Assembly: GCF_020745735.1 (NCBI RefSeq) | Contig: NC_083402.1 | Span: 8,074,004-8,138,003, forward strand | Source: Hemiscyllium ocellatum | Lineage: Eukaryota | Direction: 5' to 3' | Length of the DNA: 64,000 bases | In this document: positions 2,069 to 46,161 of the stretch, piece by piece | How the letters are laid out: each line of letters opens with the position of its first letter | Position numbering within the stretch: position 1 is the first letter of the stretch | Program-made: the position numbers and the translations under genes | Notes under the pieces: generated by a model | Seen by the model: the letters and a program-made list of their open reading frames with translations, nothing else | What the model was told of the DNA's origin: nothing | Databases searched by the model: none

Positions 2069-2416
2069 CATGTACCTGCAACCGAGTCTCTTTCTGGATC
2101 AGATACTGATAATCCGGTTCTGATCTGTATTCCACCAGACACAGGTAAGTGTGATTGTCCCTCACACTCAGCTGGTTTATCCTGGTCGAGGCGTTTCCCT
2201 CCTCTGGGTTCCCGATGAGCTCGTATCGATTTCCACCGTGTCCAGTTCTCCAAGTTCCCTGTGATTGGGCTGTAAATGTAACGATGTGTTGGTAGGGCTC
2301 CTTCCTCATCCAGGTAACAGTGGTCAGGGTAGGGTAGTACCAGCGACTGAAGATACAGGGTAAAGTAACTGAATCTCCCTCTGTCCCACTCACCACTGGG
2401 ACATTTCCCTGAGCAG
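2069..2416 (-). CDS. V-set Ig exon V2a, Siglec-like, Arg replaced by Leu
   Basis: Paralog of V2b (19 of 348 nt differ). Acceptor TTTCCTCAG|, donor CATG|GTAAGA, open frame, YLCLVEY. Confidence 0.9.
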
Positions 2417-5611: not shown

Positions 5612-5869
5612 TTTTGTTTCTGACTTGCAGCATCTGCAGTTTTTTGTTTGCATTTTCCTCAGGATGTTCGCTGTTTCATTAATTTCTACTTTTGTTTTAT
5701 TTGGTCATGGGTGTCACTGGCCCAGATGATGTGCATTTATTGTCCATCCTGATTGCCCAGGAGAAGCTGCCTTCTTCAACTGCTGCAGCCCTGAGGTGTC
5801 GGGGTTATCCAGAGTAATTTAAGGGATTGAGTTTCAGGACTTTGACCCAGCAACAGTGAAGGAATGCCA

Positions 5870-11857: not shown

Positions 11858-12244
11858 CTTCCACTTCCAGGCGTGTTCCATACCATGATTGAAACTTGCC
11901 GATATTGAGCTCCACACGACACCGATAGGAACCAACATCCTCCCGGCTCAGTCCCTCCATCATAACTGAGACATCTTTGTTGCTGAGGTTCCCCACGAAT
12001 CTGAATCGATTCCCACCGTGCCGCTGTATCACATTCTCACACAGCTCACCCTGGGAATGATCTGGACCAGGATATGTACACTTAAAGATAAAAGCCCGTG
12101 TTTCCTTCTTGTACCATAAGATGGAGCCGGTGAGTGTGAGGTGAGTGTCAGGGTGGGTGAAGCTGCAGGGTAAGACAGCAGAGCCTCCTTCCTCAGCCCA
12201 CACTCCATCCGCGATTGTCATTGACCAACCATAAGCAGACAAAG
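11858..12244 (-). CDS. V-set Ig exon V1a, Siglec-15-like, essential Arg present
   Basis: Paralog of V1b (25 of 387 nt differ). Acceptor CCCCTCACAG|, donor GAAG|GTGAG, open frame, YRCRVEL motif, four Cys. Confidence 0.9.
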
Positions 12245-13094: not shown

Positions 13095-15615
13095 AAACAG
13101 GTAAAAACAAGGACTGAGGTAAAAACAGGTAAAAACAGATGCTGGAAACCAGAGTCGAGATTAGAGTGGTGCTGGAAAAGCACAGCAGGTCAGGCAGCAT
13201 TCGAGGAGCATGAAAATCAATGTTTCAGGCAAAAGCCCTTAATCAGGATTACAGGCAGGGTAATCTGGGTTGTTCGGTATTGGAACTGGTCCTCCTGGGA
13301 GCAGATGTGGTGGAGATGAAGGAATTGGAAATATGGGATGGTGTTTTTACAGGAGGCAGGGTGGGAGGAGGTGTAGTCCAGGTAGCTGTGGGAATCAGTC
13401 GGTTTATAGTTAATGTCTGTGTTGATTCGGTCGTCCAAGATAGAAATGGAGAGGTCTAGGAAGGGGAGGAAGGGGTCTGAGATAGTCCAGATAAATTTGA
13501 GGTCGGGGTGGAAGGTGTTGGTAAAGTGGATGAACTGTTCAACCTTCCTCATAGGAGCACGAGGCAGCACCGATACAGTCATTGATGTGGCGGAGAGAAA
13601 GGTGGGGGGGTGGTGCCAGCGTAGCTGCGGAAGATGGACTGTTCCACATATCCTACGAAGAGACAGGCATAGCTGGGACCCATGCGGGTGCCCATGGCAA
13701 CTTCTTTAGTTTGGAGGAAGTGGGAGGATTGAAAAGAGAAGTTATTCAGGGTGAGGACCAGTTCAGTCAGTCGAAGGAGGGTGTCAGTGGAAGGGTACTG
13801 GTTGTGCGGCGGGAAAGGAAGAATTGGAGGGTCTTGAGTCCTGCGTGATGGGGGATGGAGGTGTACAGGGACTGGACGTCCATCGTGAAAATAAGGCGTT
13901 GGGGACCGGGGAAGCGAAAATCCTGGAGGAGGTGGAGGGCGTGGGTGGTGTCCCGAACATAGGTGGGGAGTTCTTGGACTAAAGGGGACAGAACCGTGTC
14001 GAGGTACGCGGAGATGAGTTGGGTGGGGTAGGAGCAGGCTGAGACAATGGGTCGGCCGGGGCAGTCAGGTTTGTGGATTTTGGGCAGGAGTTAGAAACGG
14101 GTGGTGCGGGGTTGTGGGACTGAGGTTGGAGGCGGTGGATGGGAGATCCCCTGAGGTGATGAGGTTATGGATGGTCTGGGAGATGATGGTTTGGTGGTGG
14201 GAGGTGGGGTCATGGTCAAGGGGGCGATAAGAGGAGGCGTCTGCGAGCTGGAGTTTGGCCTCAGCGGTATAAAGGTCGGTGCGCCAAACTACTACCGCGC
14301 CTCCCTTGTCTGCCGGTTTGATGGTGAGGTTGGGGTTGGAGCGGAGGGAGTGGAGGGCTGCACGTCCACATATCTTACAAAGAGGCAGGCATAGCTGGGC
14401 CCATGTGGGTGCCCGTGGCTACTCCTTTGGTTTGAAGGAAGTGGGAGGATTGGAATGAGAAGTTGTTCAGGGTGAGGACCAGTTCAGTCAGTTGAAGGAG
14501 GATGCCAGTGGAAGGGTACTGGTTGGTACGGCGGGAAAGGAAGAAGAAGAGGGCTTTGAGGCCTTCGTGATGGGGGATGGAGGTGTACAGGGACTGGATG
14601 TCCATAGTGAAGATAAGGCGTCGGGGACCGGGGAAGCAAAAATCATGGAGGAGGTGGAGGGCGTGGGTGGTGTCCCGAATGTAGGTGGGGAGTTCTTGGA
14701 CTAAGGGGGACAGGACCGTGTCAAGGTATGCGGAGATGAGTTCGGTGGGGCAGGAGCAGGCTGAGACAATGGGTCGGCCGGGGCAGTCAGGTTTGTGGAT
14801 TTTGGGCAGGAGGTAGAAACGGGCGGTGCGGGGTTGTGGGACTATGAGGTTGGAGGCGGTGGATGGGAGATCCCCTGAGGTGATGAGGTTATGGATGGTC
14901 TGGGAGATGATGGTTTGGTGGTGGGAGGTGGGGTCATGGTCAAGAGGGCAGTAGCAGCTGGTGTCCGCAAGCTGGCGTTTAGCCTCAGCGGTGTAAATGT
15001 CAGTGCCCCAAACTACTACCGCGCCTCCCTTGTCTGCCGGTTCGATAGTGAGGTTGGGGTTGGAGCGGAGGGAGTGGAAGGCTGCACGTTCCGAGGGTGA
15101 GAAACTGGAGTGGGTGAGTGGGGTGGAGAGGTTGAGGCAGTTAATGTCTCAGCGGCAGTTGGCAATGAAGAGATCGAGGTCAGGTAAGAGGCCAGCACGG
15201 GGTGTCCAGGTGGATGGGGTGTGTTGGAGGCGGAAGAAGGGGACGTCAGTGGGTGGGCGAGAATCCTGGTTGAAGAAGTAGGTGCAGAGGTGAAGGCGGT
15301 GGAAGAATTGTTCAATATCTCGCTGCGTGTTGAACTCTTAATCTGAGAGCATAGGGGAATGAAGGTGAGACCTCTGCCGAGGACCAATCGTTCATCCTCA
15401 GAGAGGGGGAGGTCTGGAGGGATGGTGAACACACAGCAGGGCTGGGAGCTAGGAGCTGGAGTGGGGCTGGAGCTGGGAGTTCGGGCGGGGTTAGGCGTGG
15501 GGACGGGAATCGGGGCGGAGACGGAGATCGGGGCAGGGGTGGGGTTCGGCGTGGGGGGCGGGGTTAGGCTTGCGAACGGAGATCGGTGTGGGGTCATCTG
15601 CAGTCCTCACTTTCT
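13095..15615 (-). mobile_element. Penelope-like element with internal deletion and tandem internal duplication
   Basis: Penelope RT fragments; 13740-14345 is repeated at ~14465-15070; shares its terminal junction with the unit-B element. Confidence 0.85.
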
Positions 15616-20998: not shown

Positions 20999-21300
20999 AT
21001 GAAAATTGAATGGGCTACAGAATGTTGCCAGACAGTCATTGCAAAACTGAAAGTAATTTTAACAAATAAATGTGTATTAACTGCACCGAACTTTAATAAA
21101 CCATTTCAATTAGCAGGAGATGTTTGCGATTTGGGGATTGGAGCAGTTCTCCTACAGGACAACGAGGCTGGGATGGAGAAACTTGTGGCTTATTTTTCAA
21201 AAAAGGTCGAACCAACATCAGAAAACCAACTTGATGATAGAAAAGGAAGTTAGCAGCTTTTCAACACTTTGGATTATATACTCAACATGGAGACAATGAG
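20999..21300 (+). mobile_element. Gypsy RT/RNase H junction fragment (paralog 42754-43050)
   Basis: LTAPNFNKPFQLAGDVCDLGIGAVLLQD..VAYFSKK. Confidence 0.85.
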
Positions 21301-26639: not shown

Positions 26640-29400
26640 GGAAAATCATTGCTGAGGGAGGTTTTGTTTCAAACCAAGTTGTGTTCACAGAGCTCTTGGA
26701 CAGGTTAACGCGTGGTTGGCTCTGGAGTGGGATTTTATTTTTAATCAGAACATTGATAGCTGTCTGCTGACCACTTGTGCTTATTATTAGCTCTTTGGAT
26801 AAAGAAATGTAGTTTATTTTAGAGTTAAGATGTGAGTGTAAGTTGGTTCTTTTTTGACTTAATGACATTGTGGGCATACAAGAGACACAGCATTAGATGG
26901 CCAGTAGATTTCGAGAAGTGATAACACAGCAGGATCAGTCAGATAGAAGGATGACTGTCAGGAAAGGTAAGAAGGTAGTTCAGAAATCTCTCGTACTGTT
27001 GAAAGGATAATCTCTCAGAGGAAGTTAGAAGGGACAGTCAGATCTTGGGCACTAAAAATGAACCTTATGTTCAAAGGGGTTTGACAAAATTTAAAAGAAT
27101 AATTGTTGTAGGTGATTCTCCTGTCAAGGACACAGATACTAGGCTCTGCAGCAGTGAGCATGGATCTAGGATATTATACTGTTTTCTTGGTGCTAGGATT
27201 AAGGACATTACAAAATGTTTGAAGCATACTGTTAAAGGGAATAATGAGATACTGGAAGTTTTTGTACACATTTATTGGAATAACATAGTTAGGGAAAGGA
27301 TTAAGGCTTTACAAAGTAATATCAAAGGTTAGGTCGACGATTAAAAACCAGACCCTCAAAAGTAATAATCTCTGGTTTACTCCCAAAGCCAAGCTCAGAT
27401 GAGGGAACAAAAGGATAAAGGAGACAAATCAATGGCTGAAGAGGTGGTGTAATGTTCAGGGATTCAGATTCTTAGATCACTGCGATCTCTTCTGAGACAG
27501 AAAAGACCATTCACAAAGGATGGTTTCAACTGTACTGCTTTCAGGAACAATGTGTGAATAAAGAGATTGAGGTTCCAGTCAGGGATAGGAGAGAATCATA
27601 CACTAAATATAAACAACTGGATCCAAATGGATCTCTTGCACCATATAATGAGTGTCGGGGCATTCATACGAGGGCGATCAGGAAGTCAAAGAAAGGACAT
27701 GAGATAGCCTCAACAAGTAAGGTTAAGGATAATCCAAAGGGATTCTATAAATACATTAAGACCAAGACAGCAACACGAGACAGAGGAAAGGGCAAAGAGA
27801 TTGCCTTTGTGTTCGACCTCTGGAAATGGGAGAGATCTTAAGTGAATATTTTGTGTCAGTTTTTACAGTGGAGAGAGAAGTGGAGGCGAGAGAACGCTGA
27901 GAAATAAATATTGATGTTTTGAAAACCGTTTGCATTACAGAAGAGGAAGGGCTAGAGGTCTTTGAAAATATAAATCTCTGAGACCTGGTCTCATGAATCC
28001 CAGGACTTTGTCAGAAGTTAAGAGGAAATCGCTGGGCACCTTGCAGAAACATTTGTATCATCTATAAATATGAGTGAGACGCTGAATGAGTGCAGAGTGG
28101 CTAATGTTCAAGAAGGGATGTCAGGGGAAGCCTGGGAACTTCAGACCTGTGAGTCTGACTTCAGTGGTGGATAAGTTGTTGAAAATAATTCTGAAATTTG
28201 GGATTTATATGCATTTGGAGAGACAAGGAATGATTAGGGATGGTCATCATGGGAGACTGATTAGCAAGATTAGATCTCAAGGAATACAGGGAGAACCAGT
28301 TATTTGGATCCAGAAATGGCTCAAAGGTAGAAGACAGTGGGTGGAGATGGAGGGTTGTTTTTCAGACTGGAGGCCTGTGACCAGTGGAGTGCCACAAGGA
28401 TCGGTGCTGAGTCCTCTACCTTTTGTCATATACATAAATGATTTGGATGCGAGCATAAGAGGGACAGTTAGTAAGTTTGCAGATGACACCAAAAATCGAA
28501 GGTGTAGTGGACAGCGAAAAGGGTTACCTCAGATTACAACAGGGCCTTGATCAGATGGGGCAATGGGCTGAGAAGTAGCAGATGGAGTTTAATTCAGATA
28601 AATGTGAGGTGCTGCATTTTGGGAAAGCAAATCTTAACAAGACTTATACACTTAATGGTAAGGTCCTCGGGAGTGTTGCTGAATAAAGAGACCTTGGAGT
28701 GCAGGTTCATAGCTCCTTGAAAGTGGAGTCGCAGTTAGATAGGATAGTGAAGTAGACGTTTGGTATGCTTTCCTTTATTGGTCAGAGTATTGAGTACATG
28801 GGTATTGAGCCAGGGGGTCATGTTGCGGCTTTACAGGACATTGGTTAGGCCACTGTTGGAATATTGCATGCAATTCTGGTCTCCTTCCTATCGGAAAGAT
28901 GTTGTGAAATTTGGAAGTGTTCAGAAAAGATTTACAAGGATGTTGCCAGGGTTGGAGGATTTGAGCTACAGGGGAGAGGGCTGAACAGGCTGGGGCTGTT
29001 TTGCATGGAGCATCAGAGGCTGAGGGGTGACCTTATAGAGGTTTCCAAAATTATGAGGGGTATGGATAGGATAAATAGGCAAAGTCTTTTCCCTGGGGTC
29101 AGGGAGTCCAGAACTAGAGGGCATAGGTTAAGGCTGAGGGGGAAAGATATAAATCAGAGCTAAAGGCAACTTTTTTACGCAGAGGGTGGTACATGTATGG
29201 AATGAGCTGCGAGAGGAAGTGGTGGAGACTGGTACAATTGCAACATTTAAGAGGCATTTGGATGGGTATATGAATAGGAAGGGTTTGGAGGGATATGGGC
29301 CAGGTGCTGGCAGGTGGGATTCAATTGGGTTGGGATATCTGGTCGGCATGGATGGGTTGGACCGAAGGGTCTGTTTCCATGCTGTACATCTCTATGGCTC
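26640..29400 (+). mobile_element. Decayed, internally deleted CR1 with ORF1 SGNH/GDSL esterase and ORF2 pieces
   Basis: IVVGDSPVKDTD..CFLGARIKDI (27045-27332), [24 protein letters not shown], and CTATG-repeat tail. May be more than one insertion. Confidence 0.85.
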
Positions 29401-30492
29401 TATGACTCTAGTGATAGTCAGCATGGTTTTGTGCAAGGGATATTGTGTCTCACAAACTTGATTGAGTTTTTTGAAGAGGTAAACAAGAAAATTGATGAGG
29501 GCAGAGGGGTTAAAATGGTTTACTGAGACTTTGGTAAATCCTTTGATAAGGTTCCCCATGGTAGACTAATTAGTGAAGTTAGATCCCATGGGATTCCGGG
29601 TGAGCTTGGCAAGTGGATGCACAATTGGCTGAAAGGCAGAAGACAGAGAGTGACGGTGGAGGGAGGGTTTTGTTCTGGAGGCCTGTGACCAGCAGGGTTC
29701 CACGGGGATCAGGGCTGGGCCCAGTTTTGTCACTCAATAATTTGAAAAGTTTAGGTAAGAACACAGAAAGACTGTTTTGCAAGTTTGCGGTTGATACCAA
29801 CATTGATGGTACATTTAACAATGAAAGAAGGTTTTCTTAGAATACAAAGAGATCGTAATCAAATGGGAATGGGCTGAAGAGTGACAGATGGAGTTTAAGA
29901 TAAGTGTGAGGTATTGCACTTTGGGAAAACAAACAAAGGGAAGACTTACACAATTAAAAGTAGGGCCTGTGAATGCAGGGCGAGGGTAAGTCCCACATGG
30001 CTGTGATGCCTCACACAGTCAGATGGACATTGGGGGAATGTAGTTGCACTGATGGAACTGTTCCTGATGAAGATTGTAACCAAGAGGGACACATCAGACT
30101 GTTGCACTTTCCTGTTTGAGGAGATGATCTCAGTGTCAGTATAACTTTGGGGCATTTGGAGATATAACTGAATGTTCTGAGTCTGTCAATGTCTTACAAT
30201 ACTGATATCAGAATGCACCTAACAATATCAGCACAACATAGTACATTAAATATGGACTAAAATTAAATTTGAAACCCGAAGCTAAAACACTACAGATGGT
30301 GGAAATTTTAAATAAACATCAAAATGCTGCAAATACTCAGCAGGGCAGAGAGTACCTGTGGAAAGAAACAGGGTTAATGTTTTAGTTCCATGTCCTTTCA
30401 CCAGAAAATCAAATCACAAAACATTCACAGAATCTGTTCCACTCTCACTGTGCACCTTCTACAGGCTGAAGAATGTGGGAACGGTTTCTTAC

Positions 30493-30840
30493 CATGTACC
30501 TGCAGCCGAGTCTCTTTCTGGATCAGATACTGAGAGTTGAATCTTGACCTGTATTCCACCAGACACAGGTAAGTGTGATTGTCCCTCACACTCAGCTGGT
30601 TTATCCTGGTCGAGGCGTTTCCCTCCTCTGGGTTCCCGATGAGCTCGTACAGATTTCCACCGTGTCCAGTTGTCCAAGTTCCCTGTGATTGGGCTGTAAA
30701 TGTAACGATGTGTTGGTAGGGCTCCTTCCTCATCCAGGAAACAGTGGTCAGGGTGTAGGAGTCCCAGCGACTGAAGATACAGGGTAAAGTAACTGAATCT
30801 CCCTCTGTCCCACTCACCACTGGGACATTTCCCTGAGCAG
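30493..30840 (-). CDS. V-set Ig exon V2b, Siglec-like, Arg replaced by Leu
   Basis: Acceptor TTTCCTCAG|, donor CATG|GTAAGA, 348 nt, phase 1-1. V-set hallmarks: VTLPC, VSW, RY/LY-ELIGNP, D-x-x-T-Y-L-C, G strand ETRLQVH. Confidence 0.9.
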
Positions 30841-33800
30841 CTGAGGAAAGGACAAACATCAGAATGGATGAGGTCAGTGTGCAGAAGTTCTTATTTCAAT
30901 ATGTTATATTCCTTTCAACTTCACAATAAAATGAACAATTAAAGACTCCACTCACATCTCTAACAGGTCTGTCCTAGATATTCCCCAACAAGAGTCACCC
31001 TGATCAAAATGTCTCCTCGCCACTCAATTTGAAAACCTTGATTACAAGATACTTCCATGATGTGGGGGTGCCAGTGTTGCACTGAGGTGGACAAAGTCAG
31101 AAGTCACACTGCACCAGGACTTCACCTGATGCAGGAGCAGTGCTCTGAACCTTGTTATTTCAAATAAACCTGTTGGACTATAACCTGGTGCCGTGTGACC
31201 GCTGAAGGTACTTACAGATCGGATCCATTGAACCCTCCTGAATTCATTCATGCAGAACCCGCCGCCCGATGCTCAATACTAATATACTTTAAACAAGGTC
31301 AAGGATTTTACAGCCTCCCCCCTCACTCTGTTGCTCAAACACTTTCAAAGTATTGACCACACTCTTGTGTGAAGGAGAGCCCCCTGGTGTCATTCCTAAT
31401 GTAACCATTCACCAGCTCCAACCTGTGACCTTTGAAATGAGCACAGGTTAATTTAAACTCAGAGTCCAGATTACATTTTCCTACACTGAGTAAAATATTT
31501 GGGTGCAGGAGGAGGGGGATAACCAGCCATGTGGCTCTTTGCTGCATGAACTTAAAAGAGGAACTATGGGATTAAATGTTTCCACATTCTTATTTAAATT
31601 GGTAATCTGTTATTTTGCAATTGTTCCCCTGTTTGACTTCTGTTCACAAGAGCAAATAGCCTCTCAGAATCTGCATTGTCAAGCTCCTCAGGATCTTGAG
31701 GAAGGGTCACTCTGCCTGAAACGTTAACTCCAATTTCTCTCCACAGGTGCTGCCAGACCTGCTGAGCTTTTCCTTACACTTTCCATTTTTGTTTCTGATT
31801 TGCAGCATCTGCAGTTTTTTGTTTGTATTTTCCTCAGGATGTTCGCTGTTTCATTAATTTCTACTTTTGTTTATTTGGTCATGGGTGTCACTGGCCCAGA
31901 TGATGTGCATTTATTGTCCATCCTGATTGCCCAGGAGAAGCTGCCTTTTTCAACTGCTGCAGCCCTGAGGTGTCGGGGTTATCCAGAGTAATTTAAGGGA
32001 TTGAGTTTCAAGACTTTGACCCAGCAACAGTGAAGGAATGCCAATAGAGTACAAATAGACTCAGACTTCTCTGCATTGACCAAGGCCCCAATAACAGTGA
32101 GAACAGTCCCAGCCCTGTCAACCCTGCAAAGGCCTCCTCAGTAACATCTAGGAGCTAGTGCACAGACGGATCGACTATCAGTCTCACATGGTCCAACTCA
32201 CAGAACCATAACTTACAATATCACAGACACCACGATCACTGTCCCTGGACACAGCCTGACCCACCACCAGGACAGAGCCAGCAGAGGTGGAGGCACAGTG
32301 GTATACTGTCAGGAGGGAGTTGCCCAGGGACTCCCCAATATGAAGTCCCCACGTTAAAGACTACATTGTAAGCCCATTGAACTGCAATCTGTAACCTCAC
32401 AATCCACATTAACACACCCCCACACCAACATTCCCGTCAGGCTGGGAGATCAATGAAGAGACATGTGATTTTGCTGCATGCAACCAGATGAAAGTGAGGA
32501 TTGCAGATGTTGGAGATCAGAGTGTGTATAACACCAGGCAAACTGAAATGTGTGAGACCAACACAATGAATCTACAATGTCCCCAGGACTACTTGCTCAT
32601 CAAACAGCAGAAACAGCACACAACAGAGCCACCCCATAACCAATGGATCAGATGGCTCTGCAGTCCTGCTATAGACAGTCCTGAATGGTGGGGGACAATT
32701 GCTGCACCAGTTGTTCCAGTACAGAAAGCGCTTGATGTTGTCTACATGGACTTCAGTCAAGCCTTTGACAAGTTCCCTCACTGCAGACTGGTAAAAATGT
32801 GAAGTCACATGGTATCGGGGTGAGCTGGGAAGGTGGACACCGAACTGACTTAGTCATAGTAGACAGAGGGTAACAATGGAATGGAGGGTTGTAACAAGTG
32901 ATGTTCCACAGGGATCAGTGCTGAGATGTCTGCTGTTCATGGCCTATCCAATGATTTGGAGGAGAACGTGTCTGGTCTAATTTGTAATTTTGCAGGCGAT
33001 GCAAAGATTGGTGGAGTCGAGGATAGTGAGAAGGATTGTCAGAAGGTTCAGCAGGATACAGATCAGTTCAAAGCCCTTGGAATCCTTAACCAACCTTATC
33101 GGGAATGTCCCTGCAGCTGAGGGGATGCAGCAGATCAAGAAGGCAGCTCACCATTCCCTTCTCCAGGGTAATTAGGGATGGCCAATATCGGCTGACCCAG
33201 CATGTGACACCCACGTCCCCTTGAACAATGAAAAGATAACAATACTTCCCAGTCAGGATGGTCTGTATCTGATGCCATTTTTTACACTGAGGTCATAGAG
33301 GTCACTACTTTGGAAGGTGCTGGTGGAGGAAGTGTTGCTGCCTTGCTGCAGTGTATTTTATTGTTATTTTTATTGTTACAATACTGTTGGGGTGGGGGAG
33401 TTCCAGGATTTTGACCCAGTAACAGTGACAGGGAGCAATATATTTTACTGCTCTCTTCCAGACAAGTGGGGAGTATTCCATCACACTTCTAACTGGTCAA
33501 TATGCTTTGGAGTCAGGAGGTGTGTTAATTTACAGGATCTCCAGCCTGTGACCTACTCTTGGAGTCACAATTCCATTTACACTCCTGGGTTCACTCCTTG
33601 TCCACAACAGAGTGAGTCATTCAGGGGGCAGTTAAGGGTCAACCTCATTACAGTAGGTATGGGGTCGCATGTAGGTCAGACCATTTAGGATACAGATTTC
33701 CCTCCCTAAAAGACATGAGTGAACCATGTTTTTTTTGTCGGAGGTGCCTACATGGTCTTTATTAAACTGGCTTTTCAGTCGAGATTCCTTTCAAATTCAA

Positions 33801-34339
33801 ATTTCACAATCTGCCATGGATTGGAAAGTATTCCCCAGGACATTTGCCTCTGCAGAGTCCTTCTCCCCCCATCCATCTATTTTCTGCTCAGCCAATAGAA
33901 AATGAAGATAGAAACAGTGAGGTTTTCAGCCAATGCGAGCTGAGGGTTCCCTCACTTTGAGACGTGCTCATCCAATGAGGGCTCAGAATTTATGGATCTC
34001 TTTTTCTCACCCAATGCCAATAGAGCAGGACTGTCATTGGGAAGGGGGTCTTGGAGCTTGAATCCTTGATGATGTTGTGTCTGTTCCCTGCCCCAAAAAA
34101 CTGAAGCCGGTCTGACCACAGCAAATGAGTGACTGTGGGAGGTTTCAGAGTCGGAAATGGGTTGGTCTGTAAATCCCAGCCAGGTCTCTCTCTCTCTCTC
34201 TCTCCTTCTCACTGCCTCCTGCCTGAGACCAACTGGAAGAGCCCAGGAGAAGAACCCAACCCGAGAGCTCCTGGACCTGGTGGAGCCTGTCCCCATTGAG
34301 TTGTCAGGGCAGTGACACCATCCGAACATTGTTCCTCAC

Positions 34340-34726
34340 CTTCCACTTCCAGGCGTGTTCGATACCTTGTTTGCAAATTGCCGATATTGAGCTCCACTCG
34401 ACACCGATAGAAACCAGCATCCTCCCGGCTCAGTCCCTCCATCATTACTGAGGCATCTTTGTTGGTGAGACTCCCCACGAATCTGAATCGATTCCCACCA
34501 TCCCGCCGTCTCACATTCTCACACAGCTCACCCTGGGAATGGTCTGGACCAGGATATGTACACTTAAAGATAAAAGCCCGTGTTTCCTCCTTGTACCATA
34601 AGATGGAGCCGGTGAGTGTGAGGTGAGTGTCAGGGTGGGTGAAGCTGCAGGGTAAGACAGCGGAGCCTCCTTCCTCAGCCCACACTCCATCCGCGATTGT
34701 CATTGACCAACCATTAACAGACATCT
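34340..34726 (-). CDS. V-set Ig exon V1b, Siglec-15-like, essential Arg present
   Basis: Acceptor (CT)n CCCCTCACAG|, donor GAAG|GTGAG, 387 nt, phase 1-1, no stops. Motifs WSMT..AVLPCSFTHP..ILWY..FKC..ELCE..RFRFVG..YRCRVEL..TRLEVE resemble, from recall, Siglec-15 (WSMQ..AVLPCTFTHP..FRC..ELCQ..RFRLLGN..YFCRVEF). Orthology not established. Confidence 0.9.
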
Positions 34727-35574
34727 CTGTGAGGGGAGAGAAAGAGAGAGAGAGAGGATATGAGCACAGCACAGACACCAAACAGTGAGGAAAAACACTG
34801 AATCTGTTGTATGATGAGAAAATATATAACATTGTTCAGTCATGGTTTATAAACTAACCTGGGACAGTGTGGAATGAGCTTCAGGCTGGAGCACAACAGG
34901 AGGTTTCAGGGGGTTTGTGTTCGACTGTGGGTGTTTGTTGCTGTTGGTTGATGAGAGTTTTTGGTGCCTGAGAGTTTCCAGGAGACCCAGAGTGATCTGA
35001 AGAGCAGGACTCAGGGCCCTCCCTGCAGAACCTTTTCTATTTCCCATTACCTTCTACTCTATTACCGAGCCAGCCTTCAGCAACCTGGCTCATTCATCAG
35101 GCGTAGCAGAGGGATGGGGTACACAGTGAAAGTATTGCAGAGGGTGAAGGTGATACACAGAGACATGAAGAAGGAGAACTGAAGTAAAAAAATAAATAAG
35201 TCATAATTCCAGAAAACTGCTGTCTCATTAGAGAGAGGTGACTGATGGTGATTTAACCTGAGGGCCACTCTGCCTCAGACAAGGGGCGCGGTTGAGAAGC
35301 TGAGACCTTCATGGTCCCCACAGACAGTATGGGAATTAAACCCACATTGTTGGCATTACTCCACATCGCAAACCAACTGTCCAGCCAACCAAGCTAACTG
35401 ATCCAACAAGATGATCCAAGGAAATCCAGAAGGCAGTGTGAATATCATCAAGGGAGGTCATAAGGGAGTGTGGCATGGCTGGGTGGCATTTACTTGTGGG
35501 TAAGGCAGATGAGCTGATGGTGTAGATTAACACATTGGTATATGATTTAGTTGTTATTGCAAAGACAGATAAAA

Positions 35575-38305
35575 ACAAGGACTGAGGTAAAAACAAGGAC
35601 TGCAGATGCTGGAAACCAGAGTCGAGATTGCTGGAAAAGCACAGCAGGTTAGGCAATATCCGAGGAGCAGGAAAATCAATGTTTCGGGCAAAATCCCTTC
35701 ATCAGAAATAGCGGCAGGGTGCCTGCAGAGTGGAGAGACAAATGAGACGGGGTAGGGGTGGGGAAAAGTTAGCATTGAGTACAATAAGTGAATGGGGATG
35801 GGGAAGAAGGTGATAGGTCAGAGAGGAGGGTGGAGTGGAAGGCTTCTTTAGGGTAGGCAAGATTGACAGCAGAGGTGTCAATGTGTTGCTGGAAAAGCAC
35901 AGCAGGTCAGGCAGCATCCAAGGAGCAGGAGAATCGACGTTTTGGGCATGAGCCTTTCTTCAGGAATGAGGAGAGTGTGCCAAGCAGGTTAAGATAAAAA
36001 GTAGGGAGGGGGGATTGGGGGAGGGGTGTTGGAAGTGCGATAGGTGGAAGGAGGTTCAGGTGAGGGTGATAGGCCGTTGTGGGGGTGGGGACGGAGAGGT
36101 CAGGAAGAAGACTAAAGGTTAGGAAGGTGGTGCTGAGTGGTGCTGAGTTCGTGTGTTGGGACTGATATAAGGTGGGGGGAGGGGAAATGAGGAAACTGGA
36201 GAAATCTGAGTTTATCCCTTGTGGTTGGAGGGTTCCTAGGCGGAAGATGAGGCGCTCTTCCTCCAGCCGTCGTGTTGCTATGGTCTGGCGATGGAGGAGT
36301 CCAAGGACCTGCATGTCCTTGGTGGAGTGGAGGGGGAGTGGGAGTGTTGATCCATGGGGTGGTTGGGTAGGTTGGTCCGGGTGTCCCAGTGGTGTTCTCT
36401 GAAATGTACCGCAAGTCAGCGGCCTGTCTCCCCAATATAAAGGAGGCCACATCTGGTGCCGTGGATGCAGTAAATGATGTGTGTGGAGGTGCAGGTGAAT
36501 CTGTGGCAGATATGGAAGGATCCCTTGGGGACTTCGAGGGAGGTAAGGGGAGAGGTATGGGCGCAAGTTTTGCATTTCTTTCGTTTTCAGGGGAAGGTAT
36601 CGGGAGTGGAGGTTGGGTTGGTGGGGGATGTGGACCTAACAAGGGAGTAACGGAGGGAGTGGTCTTTTTGGAATGCTTATAGGGGAGAGGAGGGAAATAT
36701 ATCCCTTGTGGTGGGGTCCGTTTGGAGGTGTTGGAAATGATGACGGATGATATGATGTATATGGAGGTTGGTGGCGTGGTAAGTGTGGACCAGTAGGGTT
36801 CTGTCCTGGTCACGATTGGAGGGGCGAGGCTCAAGGGTGGAGGAGCAGGAAGTGGAGGAGATGCAGTGGAGGGCATCGTCGATCATGTCTGGGGGGAAGT
36901 TGCGGTCTTTGAAGAAGGAGGCCATCTGGGTTGTTCGGTATTGGAACTGGTCCTTCTGGGAGCAGATGTGGCGGAGACGAAGGAATTGGAAATATGGGAT
37001 GGCGTTTTTACAGGGGGCAGAGTGGGATGAGGTGTAGTCTAGGTAGCTGTGGGAATCGGCCGGTTTATAGTTAATGTCCGTGTTGATTCGGTCATCCAAG
37101 CTAGAAATGGAGAGGTCTAGGAAGGGGAGGGAGGAGTCTGAGATAGTCCAGATAAATTTGAGATCGGGATGGAAGGTGTTGGTAAAGTGGATGAACTTTT
37201 CAACCTTTCTCATGGGAGCACGAGGCAGCGCCGATACAGTCATCGATGTAGCGGAGGAAAAGGTGGGGGGTGGTGCCAGTGTAGTTGCGGAAGATGGACT
37301 GTTAAACATATCCTACGAAGAGGCAGGCATAGCTGGGGCCCATGCGGGTGCCCATGGCTACTCCTTTGGTTTGGAGGAAGTGGGAGGATTGGAAAGAGAC
37401 GTTGTTCAGAGTGAGGACCAGTTCAGTCAGTCAAAGGAGGATGTCAGTGGAAGGGTACTGGTTGGTACAGTGGGAAAGGAAGAAGCGGAGGGCTTTGAGT
37501 CCTTCATGATGGGGGATGGAGGTGTACAGGGACTGGACGTCCATGGTGAAGATAAGGTGTTGGGGACCGGGGAAGCGAACATCATGGACGAGGTGGAGGG
37601 CGTGGGTGGTTCTTGGACTAAGGGGGACAGGACCGTGTCAAGATATGCGGAGATGAGTTTGGTGGGGCAGGAGCAGGCTGAGACAATGGGTTGGCCGGGG
37701 CAGTCAGGTTTGTGTATTTTGGGCAGGAGATAGAAACGGGCAGTGCGGGGTTGTGGGACTATGAGGTTGGAAGCTTTGGACGGGTGAGAAGTTGGAGTGG
37801 GTGAGAGGGGTGGAGAGGTTGAGGCAGTTAATGTCGCGGTGGCAGTTGGCAATGAAGAGATCGAGGTCAGGAAAGAGGCCAGCACAGGGTGTCCAGGTGG
37901 ATGGGGTGTGTTGGAGGCGGAAGAAGGGGACGTCAGTGGGTAGGCGAGAATCCTGGTTGAAGAAGTAGGCGTGGAGGTGAAGGCGGTGGAAGAATTGTTC
38001 GATGTCTCGCCGCATGTTGAACTCGTTAATCCGAGAGCGTAGGGGAATGAAGGTGAGGCCTCTGCTGAGGATCGATCGTTCATCCTCAGAGAGGGGGAGG
38101 TCTGGAGGGATGGTGAAAACACGTCAGGGCTGGGAGCTAGGACCTGGTGTGGGGCTGGAACTGGGAGTGGGGGCGGGGTAAGGCGTGGGGACGGGAATCG
38201 GGGCGGAGACGGAGATCAGGGTAGGGGTGGGGTTCGGCGTGGGGGGCGGGGTTAGGCTTGCGAACGGAGATCGGCGTGGGGGCATCTGCAGTCCTCACTT
38301 TCTCC
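35575..38305 (-). mobile_element. Penelope-like element (paralogous insertion in unit B)
   Basis: RT and GIY-YIG fragments (TKDMQVLGLLHRQT..RRLEEERLIFRLGTLQP), two terminal pLTR-like segments. Confidence 0.88.
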
Positions 38306-38914
38306 AACAAGCTTGACAGCACAATGTCCCGGGTATAGAACCATCAGATGAGACATGTGGGGGAAGGGGAATGTAAAAGAGGAGGGGGTATTGCGACATT
38401 GATCAAGGAGTCAATTGCTGTAATAAGATGGATGATATCTTAGAATATTCTTCAAATGAGGCCACATGGTACAATGTAAAAACAAAACCCCATCACCACC
38501 CTCTGTCTCCTACCATCACGTCAATTTTGTTTCCAATTCATATTCTTCCCCTGAATCCCATGTGATCTGACTTTACTAACTGGTCTACCATGCGGAACCT
38601 TGTCAAAGGCTTTGCAAAATGACCAAGTCAATAACATCTCCCATCTTGCCCTCATCAATCTTTCTGGTTATATCATCAAAAAAGTTAATCAAGTTTGTGA
38701 GACATGATTTCCCCTGCACACAGCAGTGCTGACTATCCCTTATCCCTGGTGTTGGGTGAGGTTTTTAAACTTTGTCCACCCCAGTCCAACACCGGCACCT
38801 CCACATTATATTCCTTAACAGTCCTAACTTCTTCACATGCCTGTAAATCCTATTTCTCAGAACCTCCTCCAAGAACCTATCCACCAGTGATGTCAGACTC
38901 ACAGGGTTATAGTT

Positions 38915-39226
38915 TTTTAGATTAGACTTACAGTGTGGAAACAGGCCCTTCAGCCCAACAAGTCCACACCGACCCGCCGAAGCGAAACCCACCCATACCC
39001 CTACATTACCCCTTACCTAACACTACGGGCAATTTAGCATGGCCAATTCACCTGACCCGCACATCTTTGGACTGTGGGAGGAAACCGGAGCACCCGGAGG
39101 AAACCCACGCAGACACGGGGAGAACGTGCAAACTCCACACAGTCAGTCGCCTGAGTCGGGAATTGAACCCGGGTCTTCAGGCGCTGTGAGGCAGCAGTGC
39201 TAACCACTGTGCCACCGTGCCGCACC
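38915..39226 (-). mobile_element. Full-length HE1-type tRNA-derived SINE, present only in unit B
   Basis: A box TGGCACAGTGG, B box GGTTCAATTCC, CR1-derived 3' tail, TAGTT duplication at 38910-14 and 39227-31. Empty site at ~16220 in unit A. Confidence 0.92.
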
Positions 39227-42200
39227 TAGTTCCCAGGCATCTCCTTGCAGCCTTTCTGCAATAAAGGCATAATGTTAGACAACGTCCAGTCCTCCAGCAC
39301 CTTACCTTTGGATGCAGATGATGCAAATATCTCTGCTAGAGGCCCCATAATTTCTTCCCTAATGTGCCATAATGCCCTGGGATACACATGACCATGTCCT
39401 GATGATTAATCACCTTTATGTTTTCAGGAACTCCAGCATTTCCTCTTCTGAAATGTAGGCTGTTTTCAAGCCATCAATATTTATTTTCCCAAGCTCCATG
39501 TCTTAAAGAGTGACTTAAAAGGGGGAAAGAGAGTTGGAGAGGTTTGGGCAGGAATTCTCACAATCTTGGAGATTGAAAGTTAGGCACCAGTGATCTTAAT
39601 ATTACAGTCTGGTGAAACCACCACCAGTCATCTCTTGCTAATGAGAGATTGGCCCGATGCCCCCTGGGACTATGGTGAGTTTACATTTACAATAAGGGAT
39701 ATGGAGGGGCCAGATTTGGAAATATTGTGAGTATATGAAGATGACAGACCCAATGCTGTGGAAGAATTTGAACCTGAGGAGGATAATCTTTCATTTTATG
39801 TCTTTTTCAATTCACGAGCAGTTCTGGGCACCACACCTTGGGAAGGATATTCTGTACCGGGCCACCAATCAGCTCACACTACTCTGATGTGTGTACAAGC
39901 AGGCACCACAAGCAGGTTGATACAAAGGTGCCAGGATGGACGTCAGGTTATGTATGAACTTCCTGTAATAGATCACCAGCCCCTGGAACGACCCAAGCTG
40001 TGGTACTGATGTGGAAATTAGGGTCACCTCTGCCTGCCCTCTTCCAATGGGTGTTACCCAGTCTTATTGACTCTGTCGTTTAAGTAGGACACTCAGGGTG
40101 CCTGGATTCTATATTTACCCCTAACTAATTCACCTCACCTGCACATCTTTTGGATTGTGGGAGGAAACTGGAGCACTCAGAGGAAACCAAAGCAGACACA
40201 GGGAGAATGTGCAAACATTGCATAGACAGTCGCCCAAGGCTGGAATTGAATGCAGGCCCCTGGTGCAGTGAGGCAGCAGTGCGAAACACTGAGCCAAAGT
40301 GTCGCTCTAAACCTTTCTGATTCATGTCCCTGTACAAATTTCCTATAAATGTTGTAACTGTACCTGCATCTAGCATTTTTCTTCTGGCAGTCCATTTCAC
40401 ATACAAACCCCCCTCTGTGTGAATACTTGCCCATCATGTCCCTCTTCATTCTTTCTCCACTCACCTTAAAAATATGCCCCTTGCTTTGAACTCCCCCCAC
40501 TCTGAGACAAAGACCTTTGTTATTCACTGTCTGTGTTCTCCTCACGATGTTATTAACCTCGGGGATGATCACCTTGATGGGATTGCTCTATCTGCCCTCA
40601 ATAGACAGGTGGAAATTGAGGAACAAAAATGTCAAGAGATCTCAGCTCTATGTAAGAATAATAGGGTTGTAATAAAAGGCAATTTTAACTTTCCAGATAG
40701 AGACTGGCACTGCCATAGTGTTTGGTGCTTGGACAAGTGAGGAAATTGTTAAATGTGTTCAAGAAAATTTTCTGTCTCAATCTGTAGCTGTCCCTATCAG
40801 AGAAGGAGCAAAATGTGACATTCTCTTGGAAAGTAAGGCAAGCGACTGAAACGTTTGGGAGCAGTGATCATCATTTTGTTAGTTTTAGATTCGTTATGAA
40901 AAAGTATAGGCATTGTAAAGTAGTATATAATTAGAGTCAGGCAAAATTTGATGGCATGGGACAGGAACTTTCAAACTTGATTGGAGTAAACTGTTCACAG
41001 GTAAAGGGACGACTGGCAATAAGAGTTTGCAAAACTGAGATAATGAGAGTTCAGAGACATGATGTTCCTGTTACAGTGAAGAGTAAGCTGGTCGGAGTCT
41101 GGGATAATGGATGAACAAAGATATTGAGGCTATGCTCAAGAATAATAAGGAGTCTTTTATTAGGTATAGAAAACTGGGATCAAGCGAATCTCGTGAAGAA
41201 TATCATGCGTGTGTAGTGATTGTAACAAGGTCAGCCAGGTGGGCCTCACAGAATTTGAATACCCTAATTGGTGCAGGTAATCTGGTCCAATCAGGGAGTC
41301 CTGGCTGACAGAGAAGAACAGGAATGCTAAATATCCTGTTCACTCTGAGGGAGCTGGATCAATGCCAAGGACTCTCCACATGTAAATATGGGTTGACCTG
41401 GTGATGAAATACAAGCCTTTTAGTGGAATTATTTCAGTGACAACAGGGGTAAGATTAATAATGTAACCATGCAAAAGTGCCTACTCGCTTCAAACAAGCA
41501 GTACAACTGGCTTTACCAATGGAAAATGCAGCAAGTGGAGCAGATGAGAAATAGGATATTCCCCTGGAAGTGGGCACCCGCACCAGACCGACTGAGCTGA
41601 GGGAACCACCACCTGAGTGAAGGCAATTGCACAGCCTCACTCAGGACATATCCTGAATAGAGGGACTCCAGGTCAGCCCAGAGCAAAACCCCAAAACAAA
41701 GCCAAGCTCCAACCAAATAGTGACAAATTTCTCCAGGATCCAGGCTGGCACAGCATTGTAATTGCTGTAGGAATCAGGACTCGAGACAGTAAAAGAGTCT
41801 CATTCGACCTAAACTGAGTCAAAGAACTCATCAGTCAGTGTCCAGGAAAGTCCATCTAAATCTGGTGTAGAATAATTAATTTGTTTAACAACACCTAAAT
41901 CAGAACCAATCAAAATTGGAGTCTGGTTAAATGATGACCTATTCTGGTTGAGGTCAATACCAGAATGGCCGTTGCAGTGATCATACAACCAGTCTTTAAC
42001 AAAATTTGCCCTGGACTCCAACCCTTAGGTTTGTACAAGAGCTCAGCGAGATTGAGAACCTCATACCGGGAAACCTTTCCAAATTAAGGATACAACTTCG
42101 GTTCCAGTCTCTTATGAGAAGCAGCTGGTTCAGTGATCACTGATTGTAGTAAAGGGTTTGGACCCGAGCTTGATCAGGTGAGGTTGGTTGACAAAGAGTC

Positions 42201-44453
42201 ACCTTGCTTCATCAACATTTTTGAATAGAAAATGGCTGCCTGAATGAATACTCAATGAGTATTTATATGGTTAACCATTTGCTTAAAATCTCCACAAAGA
42301 TGAACCAACTCATTGGGTTTCATAACTGGTACGATAGGATCAAAAAACAGGAAATGTGGAGGACCCTGAAACTATGAACCATAAATACAATAGTCAGCAC
42401 CAAATCACCAAGGGATTCAGAAAAAGCTTCTCTGCAGGAAGTGGTTAGGATGTGGAACCTGCTCATACACCAAGTGGTTGACACAGTGACCATTGTTGTA
42501 CTGAAGGGGAAGCTTGATTGACACTTGAGGGAGGAAGCAACAGAGGGAAGTGCTGTCAAAGTGAGAGAAAGAAGGGTGGGGGGAGAACTTGAGTCTGGCT
42601 GTTGAAGTAACAACATGAAGATCTGAAAGCCCCTTTCCTAACCGTCCATTGACAGCCAGTGAAATGAGAGAGATAATGAGGTCCTTTGGCATTGGATTTA
42701 ATATTAAGAAAGCAGTCACATCCTTAACTAACTTGGTCGAAAAATAAACGAAAATGGAATGGGCTACAGAATGTTGCCAGACAGTCATTGCAAAACTGAA
42801 AGTAATTTTAACAAATAAATGTGTAATAACTGCACCGAACTTTAATAAAGCATTTCAATTAGCAGGAGATGTTTGTGATTTGGGGATTGGAGCAGTTCTC
42901 CTACAGGACAACGAGGCTGGAATGGAGAAACTTGTGGCTTATTTTTCAAAAAAGCTGGAATCAACATCAGAAAACCGACTTGACGATAGAAAAGGAAGTT
43001 AGCAGCTTTTCAACACTTTTTCTCCATGTTGAGTATATAATCTAATGAGACTGTCTCTTTTACTGATGGTAATCCACTGACATTTGGAGATGGAGTTTAG
43101 ATCTACAGCTGGAGAAGTGTGAGTGGACTGGAGGAAAGCTCATGTGACACCTTGATTTAAAAATTGAGCAAGGGATAAACCAGGTAGCTCCAGGCCAGTG
43201 AGTCTGAGCTCAGTGGTGGGGAATCCATTGGAAGCAATTTAAAGGGACAGAATTAATCTACACTTGAGGAGGCAGGGATTAATCAGAAACAGACAGCATG
43301 GCTCTGTTAAGGCGAGGGAGGCAGAAGATGGGAAATTATCTGCTGTTAGTCTGACCTCAGTTGTTTGTAAGATTTTAGAGAACATTACTAAGAATGAGAT
43401 TGCAGAGAACTTGGAAGTGCAGGATAAAATACAGCTGAGTCAGTATGGCTTCATCAAAGGCAGGTCATGCCTGAAATAAATCTGTTAGAAATCTTTGAGG
43501 AGGAAACAGGCAAGTTAGATAAAAAAGAACAAAGTTGGTCATTAATGAGAACATGACCGACTTGGATTTCCAGATGATCTTTGACAAGGTGTTTCAGTGG
43601 AAGCTGCTAAATAAGATAAAAGCCCATGGTGTTAGGGATTGGCGTGGTGTGACAATACTCAGACTTTCAGAGGTATATTTTGTCCTGGTATTTATTTTCC
43701 ATGAAAAGAGGTTGAGATAGAGGTGAAAAAAAGTCTGTTTCAAAACATTAAAGTAAACAGCTTGTGAGGCTTTGGGTGTTTTTTTTACAAGTTGAAACAA
43801 TAGAAGCACTCTGAACGAGTGGGGTTAAGCTCCTACATAACAAGGATTTCAGTTTAACTTTGAGAAGCTGCTGGGGTTTGGAAGCTGCTATACATTGCTT
43901 CCTGAAGGCAAATGGAATATTATCCTTCATTGTAAGAGGGATGGAGTTTAAAAAGATGGAGGTTATGCTGCAGCTGTATAGGGGGCTGGTGAGACCACAC
44001 CTGCAGTATTGTCTCCTTAATTCCGAAAGGATGCATTGGGACTGGAGATAGTGCAGGGGAGGTTCACTTGGTTAATTCCAGAATTGAGGGGCTTGGCTTA
44101 TGAGGGAAGATTGAGTCGGCTGAGACTACATTCATTGGGATTTAGAAGAGTGATGGGGGAATATTACAAAAATATGTAAAATTATGAAGGAAATGAATAA
44201 GGTAGAAGCAGGGACGTTGTTTCCACTGGTGGGTGAAACTAGAACTAGGGGGCATCAGCCTTTTGTTATAAAGCCTCAAATTATCTTGAGAATGTGACTT
44301 AAATACAGTTCTGGGTAATACACATTAATGAATCAAAACCAGCAAATCCATTCTAAAAGATGAAAGACTGGATAATCAAGGTTTGTTCAATGTATCGTTG
44401 TATCACTGTAATCTATTGACAGAAATTCTGTGTCTTATGGTCCTGTTTCACAC

Positions 44454-44488
44454 CACCTGATGAAGGAGCAGCGCTCCGAAAGCTAGTG
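44454..44488 (+). ncRNA. Minimal type I hammerhead ribozyme motif in a Penelope pLTR
   Basis: CAC-CTGATGA-A-GGAGC-AGC-GCTCC-GAA-AGCT-A-GTG: stem I CAC/GTG, stem II GGAGC/GCTCC, palindromic AGCT for stem III. The paralog at 22684-22718 has one stem II mismatch. Confidence 0.7.
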
Positions 44489-46097
44489 CTTCCAAATAAA
44501 CCTGTTGGACTATAACCTGGTGTTGTGTGATTTTTAACTTTGTCCACCCCAGTCCAACACCAGCTCCTCCAAATCTTGTAAATGAACTCTGTTTTATTTA
44601 AAACTAAATGTTTTGACCAGCCAATTCTCTCCTGCAATATCCACTTTACACCTGTTTAAAACAACGAGCAAAGTTAAGGTCTGGGCTCCCTTCTTAAAGG
44701 GTTTGAGGGATCTGGCCTGGTCCATAACAGAATGGGGACTCTGCAGGATTTGTTGTTTAGTTGCAAACTGGGATTAGAGCTGTTGAACTTGAAGGCAGCG
44801 AATGGTAAGTGTTAGTGTCTGTTGTTCTGGATGTTGGTTTTGGTTGGTGTTGCTTGGTGTAGTCAGGGCTCTTTCAGTCAGCAAAAATTTTCTGGGGCTG
44901 GAGGAAGTGACCTTGGGGGTTTTACAAAAAGGTGGTTAAAGCCAAGCTGTGGGAATGAGCAAACAAGCTGGAGTTGGAGCTGCCTCCTTCCGTGAGGAAA
45001 GGACAGATACTTACAGCAGGAGCTCAACATTTACATTTGTTGGAAACTCCTTCAGAATCTTTAGAGAGGCTAAAGTTCAGGTGAAAATGAAGCAGCTTGG
45101 GTTAGAGGCAAAAGGAAAAAACCCAAGGACAACCGAACCTTGTTAAAGGAGCAGCTCCTTCACAAAAGGAATTTCAGGTTATGGTCAGCAAGTGGGTAAG
45201 GACAGCGGAGTCCATGGAAAGGTCACCCATGGTCTTATTGGATGGTGGGGCAGGCTCAATGGGAAAACAGCTTCAAGGTAAGAAATAAAAGGTGAGAAGA
45301 GAGTTGAGGAGAGATACGTTTTCATACAGAGGGATTTAAGAGTTTGGCACTCACTGTCTGAAAGAGTGTTAGAGTTAGAAACGTGAGTAACATTTAACCA
45401 GTATTTTGGGATTTAGTAGACTTCCCATTTGCCTCTTCAGTAGCCTGCATCTCTGCTGTCTTACTTCTTTTTGATATTTTAAACTTCTGTCCAATTGACT
45501 TCCACCTCCCACCTCTACCCATCCCCCATTAATTAGTTTAAAATCCTCAAAACAGTTGGTAAAAAAGGCACAAAGATCAAGAGCTGTATTCTGGGGGAGG
45601 TCTCGTCAGATTTTTGCTAACTCACACACAAACGATGGTCCAAATGACCTCTTTCTATGCATTAAATGTCCAAGAGTCCGTGAATCGGTAATGAAACCTG
45701 AAAGTAATGAATCTTCACATGAGGAATAGTTAATTGTCACTGGCCGACAGTAATTAACACTCATCATATTGACAGAAGAGCTTTGAGGCAGAAACAGACA
45801 AGATGGAACTTTCTACACTGAGTTTAGTTTGTATCTACCAGAGAAAGGTTGTCACTGCACATCATTCAGGAAATCTCAATGGTCAACCAACTGCATGGTT
45901 TAGTTACAGCAAGTGGAACATTTTGACTTTCTGTGTTCTGTATTTGTAGTATTATTTGTAAGAAATTGAGGCATACACTTTTGTCTCATCATTGTCACTT
46001 CTCAATCAGTTCTGTCCCAGTATCTCTCTGAAACCTGGGTGTGCCTGCAGTGTTCTGTATCTCCCCTCACTCTCTGGAAGTGTTAGAAAGTACTTAC

Positions 46098-46161
46098 TGT
46101 AAGCCTGCACTGAGACTGACAGGAGGACTGCAGAAAGACAAACGTAGAGGGACTTCATCAT
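46098..46161 (-). CDS. Signal-peptide (leader) exon of a Siglec-15-like Ig-superfamily receptor gene
   Basis: Minus strand reads ATG ATG AAG TCC CTC TAC GTT TGT CTT TCT GCA GTC CTC CTG TCA GTC TCA GTG CAG GCT TAC A|GTAAGT = MMKSLYVCLSAVLLSVSVQAY. It has a basic n-region, hydrophobic core and V-Q-A cleavage motif, a consensus donor, and phase 1, matching all four downstream V acceptors. Too short for the ORF track. Confidence 0.85.

Follow-up and report, generated by a model that had tools for sequence, protein, structure and literature searches.

The locus studied here raises the question of how two immunoglobulin V-set exons that are almost identical over most of their length came to differ nearly exclusively in the loops equivalent to CDR1 and CDR3 of antibodies. 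The two exons, designated V2a and V2b, lie in a 64,000-nucleotide stretch of the genome of the shark Hemiscyllium ocellatum (contig NC_083402.1, positions 8,074,004 to 8,138,003 of the forward strand), and this whole stretch is referred to below as the window.

The window matched most of one gene, the H. ocellatum RefSeq model LOC132821685 (protein P0173, 600 aa), which was reached in two steps: 1.8 billion representative proteins were searched first, and a word-indexed search was then made. P0173 was colinear with, and essentially identical to, the leader, V1b, V2b, V1a and V2a exons of the window, all of its junctions were in phase 1 with canonical splice sites, and its stalk, transmembrane segment and tail are encoded beyond the window start. 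This colinear mapping indicated that V2b and V2a, termed paralogs in the original prediction, are not separate genes but the second and fourth domains of a single predicted receptor with four V domains. The exons and the duplicated segments that contain them are as follows.

46098 to 46161, minus strand: leader exon, 100% match to P0173 residues 1-21, the only leader in the window.
34340 to 34726, minus strand: V1b exon, domain 1, a four-cysteine V-set domain in which the Siglec arginine is kept.
30493 to 30840, minus strand: V2b exon, 348 nt long and phase 1-1, for domain 2, a V-set domain without the Siglec arginine.
11858 to 12244, minus strand: V1a exon, domain 3, duplicate of V1b.
2069 to 2416, minus strand: V2a exon, domain 4, duplicate of V2b.
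1545 to 23402, unstranded: copy a of the duplicated module, from self-alignment, with an extra LINE-like reverse-transcriptase insertion at about 3352-5612.
29969 to 45669, unstranded: copy b of the duplicated module, from self-alignment, about 95% identical to copy a.

An arrangement of two separate genes was ruled out by the presence of one leader and the lack of transmembrane and tail exons in the window; no second leader, transmembrane or tail exon of any family type was found in it even at lax thresholds. Judged by its sequence, LOC132821685 is a predicted Siglec-15-like type I receptor whose ectodomain would read leader-V1b-V2b-V1a-V2a, the four-V transcript being a computational RefSeq model. 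The two module copies could be aligned in nine blocks of 12.4 kb in all, with divergences of 2.6-5.7% (3.6-5.3% in blocks longer than 500 nt), and the V2 copies arose by a recent intragenic duplication of a V1-V2 module of about 22-28 kb.

Several other features of the duplicated segments were observed. The LINE-type element (3352-5612) is located in the intron between V1a and V2a, is present in copy a only and carries an intact reverse-transcriptase ORF of 659 aa (3486-5465, minus strand); this insertion partly accounts for the longer V1-V2 intron of that copy. GC-rich, strongly GC-skewed repeats with proline-rich ORFs were located around the V1 exons (8484-10379, 13263-15089 and 35870-37784) and, with a reverse-transcriptase YVDD motif in the ORF at 9519-9947, look like another retroelement family present in three copies. 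A 23-bp micro-inversion distinguishes the module copies (21271-21293 on the plus strand versus 43021-43043 on the minus strand, one mismatch) and is displayed by a plain alignment as a cluster of 14 mismatches. Four-V and longer models also recurred in Chiloscyllium, Stegostoma, Heptranchias and Narcine. Module number and order varied among genes and species: P0174 of Heptranchias perlo has one V1 followed by three V2-like domains, Narcine P0001 is another gene illustrating this variation, and P0175, P0176 and P0177 are V1-V2-V1-V2, with the same FG loop in both V2 domains of P0176.

The minus strand of positions 30491-30838 translated without a stop into a 116-residue V-set domain (Pfam V-set, E = 3e-16, other Ig models being far weaker), and the exon bounds at 30493-30840 were set by an AG acceptor and a GT donor. 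V2b was identical to residues 152-266 of P0173 and V2a matched residues 397-511. In blastn and tblastn searches, the sole close copy of V2b within the window was found at 2067-2414 on the minus strand, with 94.5% identity and without gaps over 348 nt; V1a and V1b were recovered as the copies of a V exon more distantly related to it. When V2b was aligned with Siglec-15, a leucine ('ylcLvey') stood opposite the Siglec-15 arginine, and this position (93) was leucine in most V2 domains of the family.

A codon-by-codon alignment of V2a and V2b gave 19 nucleotide differences, ten amino acid changes and two silent codons (R97 and L112), exactly the numbers originally counted. Codons 26-28 read YYP in V2a and DSY in V2b, and codons 99-102 read EPDY in V2a and RFNS in V2b; the silent change at codon 97 adjoins the second cluster. 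The other replacements were T34S, R56T and R63L, one each. To place these changes, V2b was modelled with AlphaFold2 from 58 aligned family sequences (mean pLDDT 90); in the resulting model, strands B (16-18), C (29-37), C'' (55-57), D (64-67), F (89-97) and G (103-115) were assigned, residues 22-28 formed the BC loop and residues 98-102 the FG loop. These strand limits place codons 26-28 in the BC loop and codons 99-102 in the FG loop, which confirmed the earlier assignment of 13 changes to these two loops (five of nine nucleotides in BC and eight of 12 in FG). Residue 56 is in strand C'' and residue 63 ends the C''-D loop, in agreement with the position near C''-D that had been given for two arginine changes. 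The four patches are located as follows.

30755 to 30763, minus strand: BC-loop (CDR1-equivalent) patch of V2b, codons 26-28, DSY, one nucleotide from the family default DSH.
30534 to 30548, minus strand: FG-loop (CDR3-equivalent) patch of V2b, codons 97-102, R-S-RFNS, a 'type 3' loop block.
2331 to 2339, minus strand: BC-loop patch of V2a, codons 26-28, YYP, with four of the five nucleotide differences derived when compared with four outgroup exons.
2110 to 2124, minus strand: FG-loop patch of V2a, codons 97-102, R-S-EPDY, a 'type 1' loop block.

The 36 structurally defined loop nucleotides of the 348-nt exon contained 13 of the 19 differences (Fisher's exact test, p = 3e-10), and a density of eight differences in 12 nucleotides was reached in none of 200,000 permutations. 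The introns flanking the V2 copies differed at 58 of 1460 nucleotides (4.0%) and the V2 framework at 5 of 321 (1.6%; p = 0.03 versus the introns), so that the expectation of a nearly invariant framework with changes clustered in the CDR1- and CDR3-equivalent loops was borne out. The lower divergence of the framework than of the introns is due to purifying selection. When the nine loop codons 26-28 and 97-102 were considered together, 14 of 27 nucleotides differed versus the 4% found in introns (p = 1e-12).

The V1 exons are also diverged. Between V1a and V1b, 25 of 396 nucleotides and 18 amino acids differed, with only four silent codons, and the changes were more scattered than those of V2 (C''-D, D-E, F and FG/G), although codons 1 to 5 of the exon (ALSAY versus EMSVN) were densely hit.

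Third codon positions took part in the V2 clusters: they differed in four of the nine loop codons (28, 97, 100 and 101) and in one of the 107 codons elsewhere (Fisher's exact test, p = 8e-5), and the loop pS between V2a and V2b was 0.42 compared with a framework dS of 0.03. Since the wobble positions change alongside the replacements, the V2 loop clusters are best read as block replacements, rather than as point mutations that accumulated or were selected individually.

If the loops were replaced as blocks, the question becomes where related blocks exist. As outgroups for V2, four exons of Chiloscyllium punctatum (L001-L004) were used. The family default at the BC block was GAC-TCC-CAC (DSH), and the four derived BC differences of V2a were polarised against these exons; the resulting V2a motif, SRWYYPP, recurred in the H. 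ocellatum paralog P0197. The FG loop of V2a is of the majority type and was two of 12 nucleotides off the EPDS block of C. punctatum L001 and L002, and four of the distinguishing nucleotides of the V2b FG block were common to L003, the sole outgroup of the 'LN' type. At the protein level, the FG type [EK]PD[SYF]QY was found in Hemiscyllium, Chiloscyllium, zebra shark and whale shark (as EPDF and KPDS in the latter two), and the type [RKS][LF]N[SF]QY was found as RLNS in C. punctatum P0178 and C. plagiosum P0009 and as SLNF in whale shark (Rhincodon) P0201. The presence of such old loop types on copies whose introns are only 4% apart indicated that short blocks were exchanged after the duplication.

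Two other origins of the patches were also considered. Neither V2 patch is the reverse complement of the other copy, and an origin by micro-inversion or reverse complementation was rejected. A compensated frameshift ('AC' moved by 5 nt, or a duplication of ACCCT) could also have produced the BC patch, but conversion is the more parsimonious reading, since SRWYYPP is present in P0197.

The same two loops were hypervariable throughout the family. The closest V2 domains numbered 24, three of them from zebra shark and 21 from Hemiscyllium and Chiloscyllium (V2a and V2b among these). In this set, a Shannon entropy of at least 1 bit was reached only at positions 23-29, 97 and 99-102, besides the exon-junction positions 1, 115 and 116, and the Wu-Kabat peaks of 58 elasmobranch V2 domains were found at the same BC and FG loops, with a minor rise at 52-58. 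The 12 loop positions contributed 44% of the pairwise amino acid differences, a 6.6-fold excess per site. This family-wide pattern is in line with the loop placement in the original prediction. Given that one BC type, [SR][RS]WDSH, was paired with at least five FG types, the loop pattern of V2 is a mosaic.

The framework showed the opposite tendency. When H. ocellatum and C. punctatum paralogs were compared, the synonymous divergence of the V2 framework was 4-7% versus 14-21% in the adjoining introns, i.e. approximately three-fold lower, and the contrast was significant in three of four comparisons. The homology of L002 and L003 to positions 28993-32340 of the window ended within about 30-140 bp of the V2 exon. 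These findings suggest exon-limited concerted evolution of V2 across the family, and a uniform framework with diverse loops is what is expected from frequent exon-level conversion combined with protection of loop diversity.

From these results we consider it probable that the loop differences were brought about after the module duplication by gene conversion in short tracts, with other family V2 exons as donors, and that the resulting loop diversity was kept by selection. A recent duplication inside the gene would have copied the V1-V2 exon pair together with some 20 kb of intronic sequence (non-coding divergence about 4%), after which the BC block of V2a would have been changed from the family default DSH to YYP, and the FG block of one of the two V2 copies would have been replaced, leaving an [EK]PD[SY]-type loop in V2a and an R[LF]NS-type loop in V2b. 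Such conversion would be the likeliest source of the blocks and would also keep the V2 framework near-identical among paralogs, with the BC and FG loops remaining diverse. It is deduced here from protein motifs and from the four C. punctatum exons, rather than from an exact DNA donor match; the donors would presumably be family members in the H. ocellatum genome. Any selection maintaining loop diversity could be diversifying or balancing and driven by ligands or pathogens, and the V2 loops may contact a ligand.

Alternatively, the BC and FG loops might be neutral and unconstrained, the clusters having resulted from complex mutations (template switching, micro-inversion or compensated indels) or from conversion fixed by drift. 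Clustered complex events have occurred in the non-coding DNA of the same duplication, where three comparably dense clusters were found in 11.7 kb of aligned sequence; two of these three are visibly single complex events, namely the 23-bp micro-inversion and a local repeat switch, which implies that some clustering may arise without a paralogous donor, and the V2a BC patch itself could be described as a duplication of the local 5 nt ACCCT or as a 2-nt shift with compensation. However, the V2 exon contains two such clusters in 348 nt, a density approximately 22-fold higher than in the 11.7 kb of non-coding duplicate (Poisson p = 0.004), and a local template for either patch was lacking, as no second match within three mismatches was found anywhere in the window. 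The loop pN/pS was about 0.4-1.9 over the 15 pairs of six exons and near or below 1 in most, which would suit neutral loops, although these Nei-Gojobori counts are unreliable given that multi-hit codons and block exchange confound pN/pS. The distinct loop types nevertheless persist across Hemiscyllium, Chiloscyllium, Stegostoma and Rhincodon on an exon of which the rest is more uniform than the introns, and this persistence is hard to explain without selection that protects the loops. A neutral origin is therefore regarded as unlikely.

Independent point mutations that were fixed after the duplication by positive selection on loop residues, with no conversion involved, could account for the ten replacement versus two silent codons and for the concentration of changes in CDR-like loops. 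This explanation is quite improbable in view of the wobble changes in four of nine loop codons versus one of 107 elsewhere, the implausibility of 13 hits in 21 nt when the background is 4%, and the pre-existence of both FG motifs and of YYP in other paralogs or species, partly at the DNA level. In addition, the loop pN/pS was 0.6 for V2a and V2b. Of the two processes put forward originally, diversifying selection or patchwork gene conversion, conversion is thus favoured by the co-change of wobble positions and the recurrent motifs.

It may also be asked whether the V2 loops form an interdomain contact that co-varies with V1, rather than a surface for an external ligand. The BC and FG loops are at the N-terminal end of a V-set domain and in a tandem array face the preceding domain, and V1a and V1b also differ (by 18 amino acids). 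Against such an interface, many different FG types are found freely combined with a single BC type and the V1 frameworks are similar, and we regard it as highly doubtful. An assembly or haplotype artefact, in which the copies would be alleles or a false duplication, is hardly credible: near-identical tandem repeats are error-prone in assemblies and nothing more specific speaks for it, whereas the copies are 4% apart over 12 kb, far above typical alleles, are further set apart by a LINE insertion of 2.3 kb, a micro-inversion and several indels, are both spliced in frame by the RefSeq model, and have counterparts in the architectures of four or more V domains that recur in Chiloscyllium, Stegostoma, Heptranchias and Narcine.

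Beyond short-tract conversion with selected loop diversity, a more far-reaching reading can be formulated, which we consider a very long shot. Elasmobranchs would in this case possess a non-rearranging antigen-receptor-like system, in which dozens of Siglec-15-derived V2 exons carry CDR1- and CDR3-like loops drawn from a limited set of ancient blocks that are combined by targeted short-tract conversion. The conversion might then be enzyme-driven, or even somatic by analogy with chicken Ig genes, and the multi-V receptors would join a putative sialic-acid-binding V1 to a variable, putatively protein-recognising V2.

As to which known receptors the family resembles, Siglec-15 was the best solved-structure match by sequence for both V1 (E = 3e-13) and V2 (E = 9e-9). 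The V2 model had a TM-score of 0.82 to 7zoz_A, and its best fold matches were the V-set domain of Siglec-15 and other V domains. The arginine of V1b ('yrcRvel') aligned with the F-strand arginine of Siglec-15 ('yfcRvef', 7zoz), and the Siglec arginine was present in both V1a and V1b. The conserved F-strand arginine of the Siglec V-set domain is essential for sialic-acid binding. A lysine in the transmembrane segment, through which Siglec-15 couples to DAP12, was found in some members of the shark family (P0007 and P0183). In contrast to Siglec-15, the second domain of the shark receptors is V-set and not C2-set and has leucine at the arginine position, the V1-V2 modules are repeated within genes, and the receptors form a large elasmobranch multigene family with ITIM-bearing and charged-transmembrane forms. 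The transmembrane segment of P0173 (residues ~520-545, outside the window) has no charged residue and thus no lysine, and its tail (residues ~512-600 including this segment, likewise outside the window) has no ITIM or ITSM. By its predicted sequence, LOC132821685 would therefore be placed outside Siglec-15 on the type of domain 2 and on the transmembrane lysine.

The labels given by NCBI to the relatives were diverse (uncharacterised, Siglec-15 for several, pIgR-like, JAML-like and others). All close relatives (at least 44% identity) were from elasmobranchs, and the distant matches included lungfish Siglec-15 and hagfish CD276-like proteins. In the lungfish protein (P0032, Protopterus annectens 'Siglec-15 isoform X2') the second domain (residues 158-267) matched shark V2 with E = 5e-17, and on this similarity a V-like second domain may predate the elasmobranch expansion.

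The family comprised at least 14 loci in H. ocellatum and many in other elasmobranchs. ITIM- or ITSM-like tails were found in P0038, P0225 and P0006, with the motifs SILYAEI, CTYASI and VTYAAV in the close relatives P0038 and P0225, and forms with a transmembrane lysine were P0007, P0013 and P0183. As for variability in CDR-like loops, another mark of paired IgSF receptors, V2 had its entropy and Wu-Kabat peaks at 23-29 and 97-102. With ITIM/ITSM tails or a transmembrane lysine among its members, the family would by analogy behave like the paired, germline-diversified IgSF families such as Siglec-5/14, Siglec-11/16, NITR, KIR and CEACAM. Further germline-diversified IgSF families are KIR/LILR, CEACAM, SIRP and PILR, and NITRs are reported from bony fish only.

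Human SIGLEC11/16 and SIGLEC5/14 are pairs of adjacent Siglec genes in which gene conversion is reported to maintain the similarity of the extracellular exons (PMC5701461, PMC4042635). The shark V2 framework is likewise more uniform than the introns. In the human pairs, however, the whole ligand-binding domain is homogenised between activating and inhibitory partners, whereas in the shark gene the framework is homogenised but short loop blocks differ, and both domains belong to one chain. The NITRs are reported to be non-rearranging multigene receptors of V type, which occur in inhibitory and activating forms and whose V domains are highly divergent (PMC2442602, PMC2814043). Receptors of the NITR and KIR type resemble shark V2 in that germline diversity is concentrated in CDR-like regions, and differ from the shark family in that only the latter has a V(Arg+)-V(Arg-) module that is repeated within genes; neither the 60 best sequence matches in the PDB nor the 50 best fold matches included an NITR.

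The MDIRs are a multigene IgSF family of cartilaginous fish with a variable number of Ig domains and activating and inhibitory forms, and are described as CD300/TREM/pIgR-like (PMC3031540). Among 88 relatives of a skate member of the present family, none was named MDIR and none was from Raja eglanteria, which, on names and descriptions rather than alignment, points to a family distinct from the MDIRs. A literature search returned nothing relevant on this receptor family in sharks.

Taken together, the results point to a Siglec-15-derived family of elasmobranchs that is large and as yet unnamed, and in which an arginine-bearing lectin-type V domain is followed by a second V domain with antibody-style hypervariable loops. 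The swapping of loop blocks is a known route of diversification in innate immune receptor families and is met here in an undescribed family of sharks. Sharks represent the oldest living lineage with immunity based on antibodies and T-cell receptors, and to our knowledge their germline-encoded innate V-type receptors are almost unknown. V2a and V2b constitute a clean natural experiment, in which the framework is the same, the introns are 4% apart and only two CDR-like loops were exchanged, and with only ten residues differing between them the idea of recognition through the loops is directly testable. Should the loops prove to bind ligands, cartilaginous fish would have in this family a counterpart of diversified receptors of the NITR, KIR or CEACAM type, and the family would also exemplify the shuffling of loop blocks in a gene that does not rearrange.
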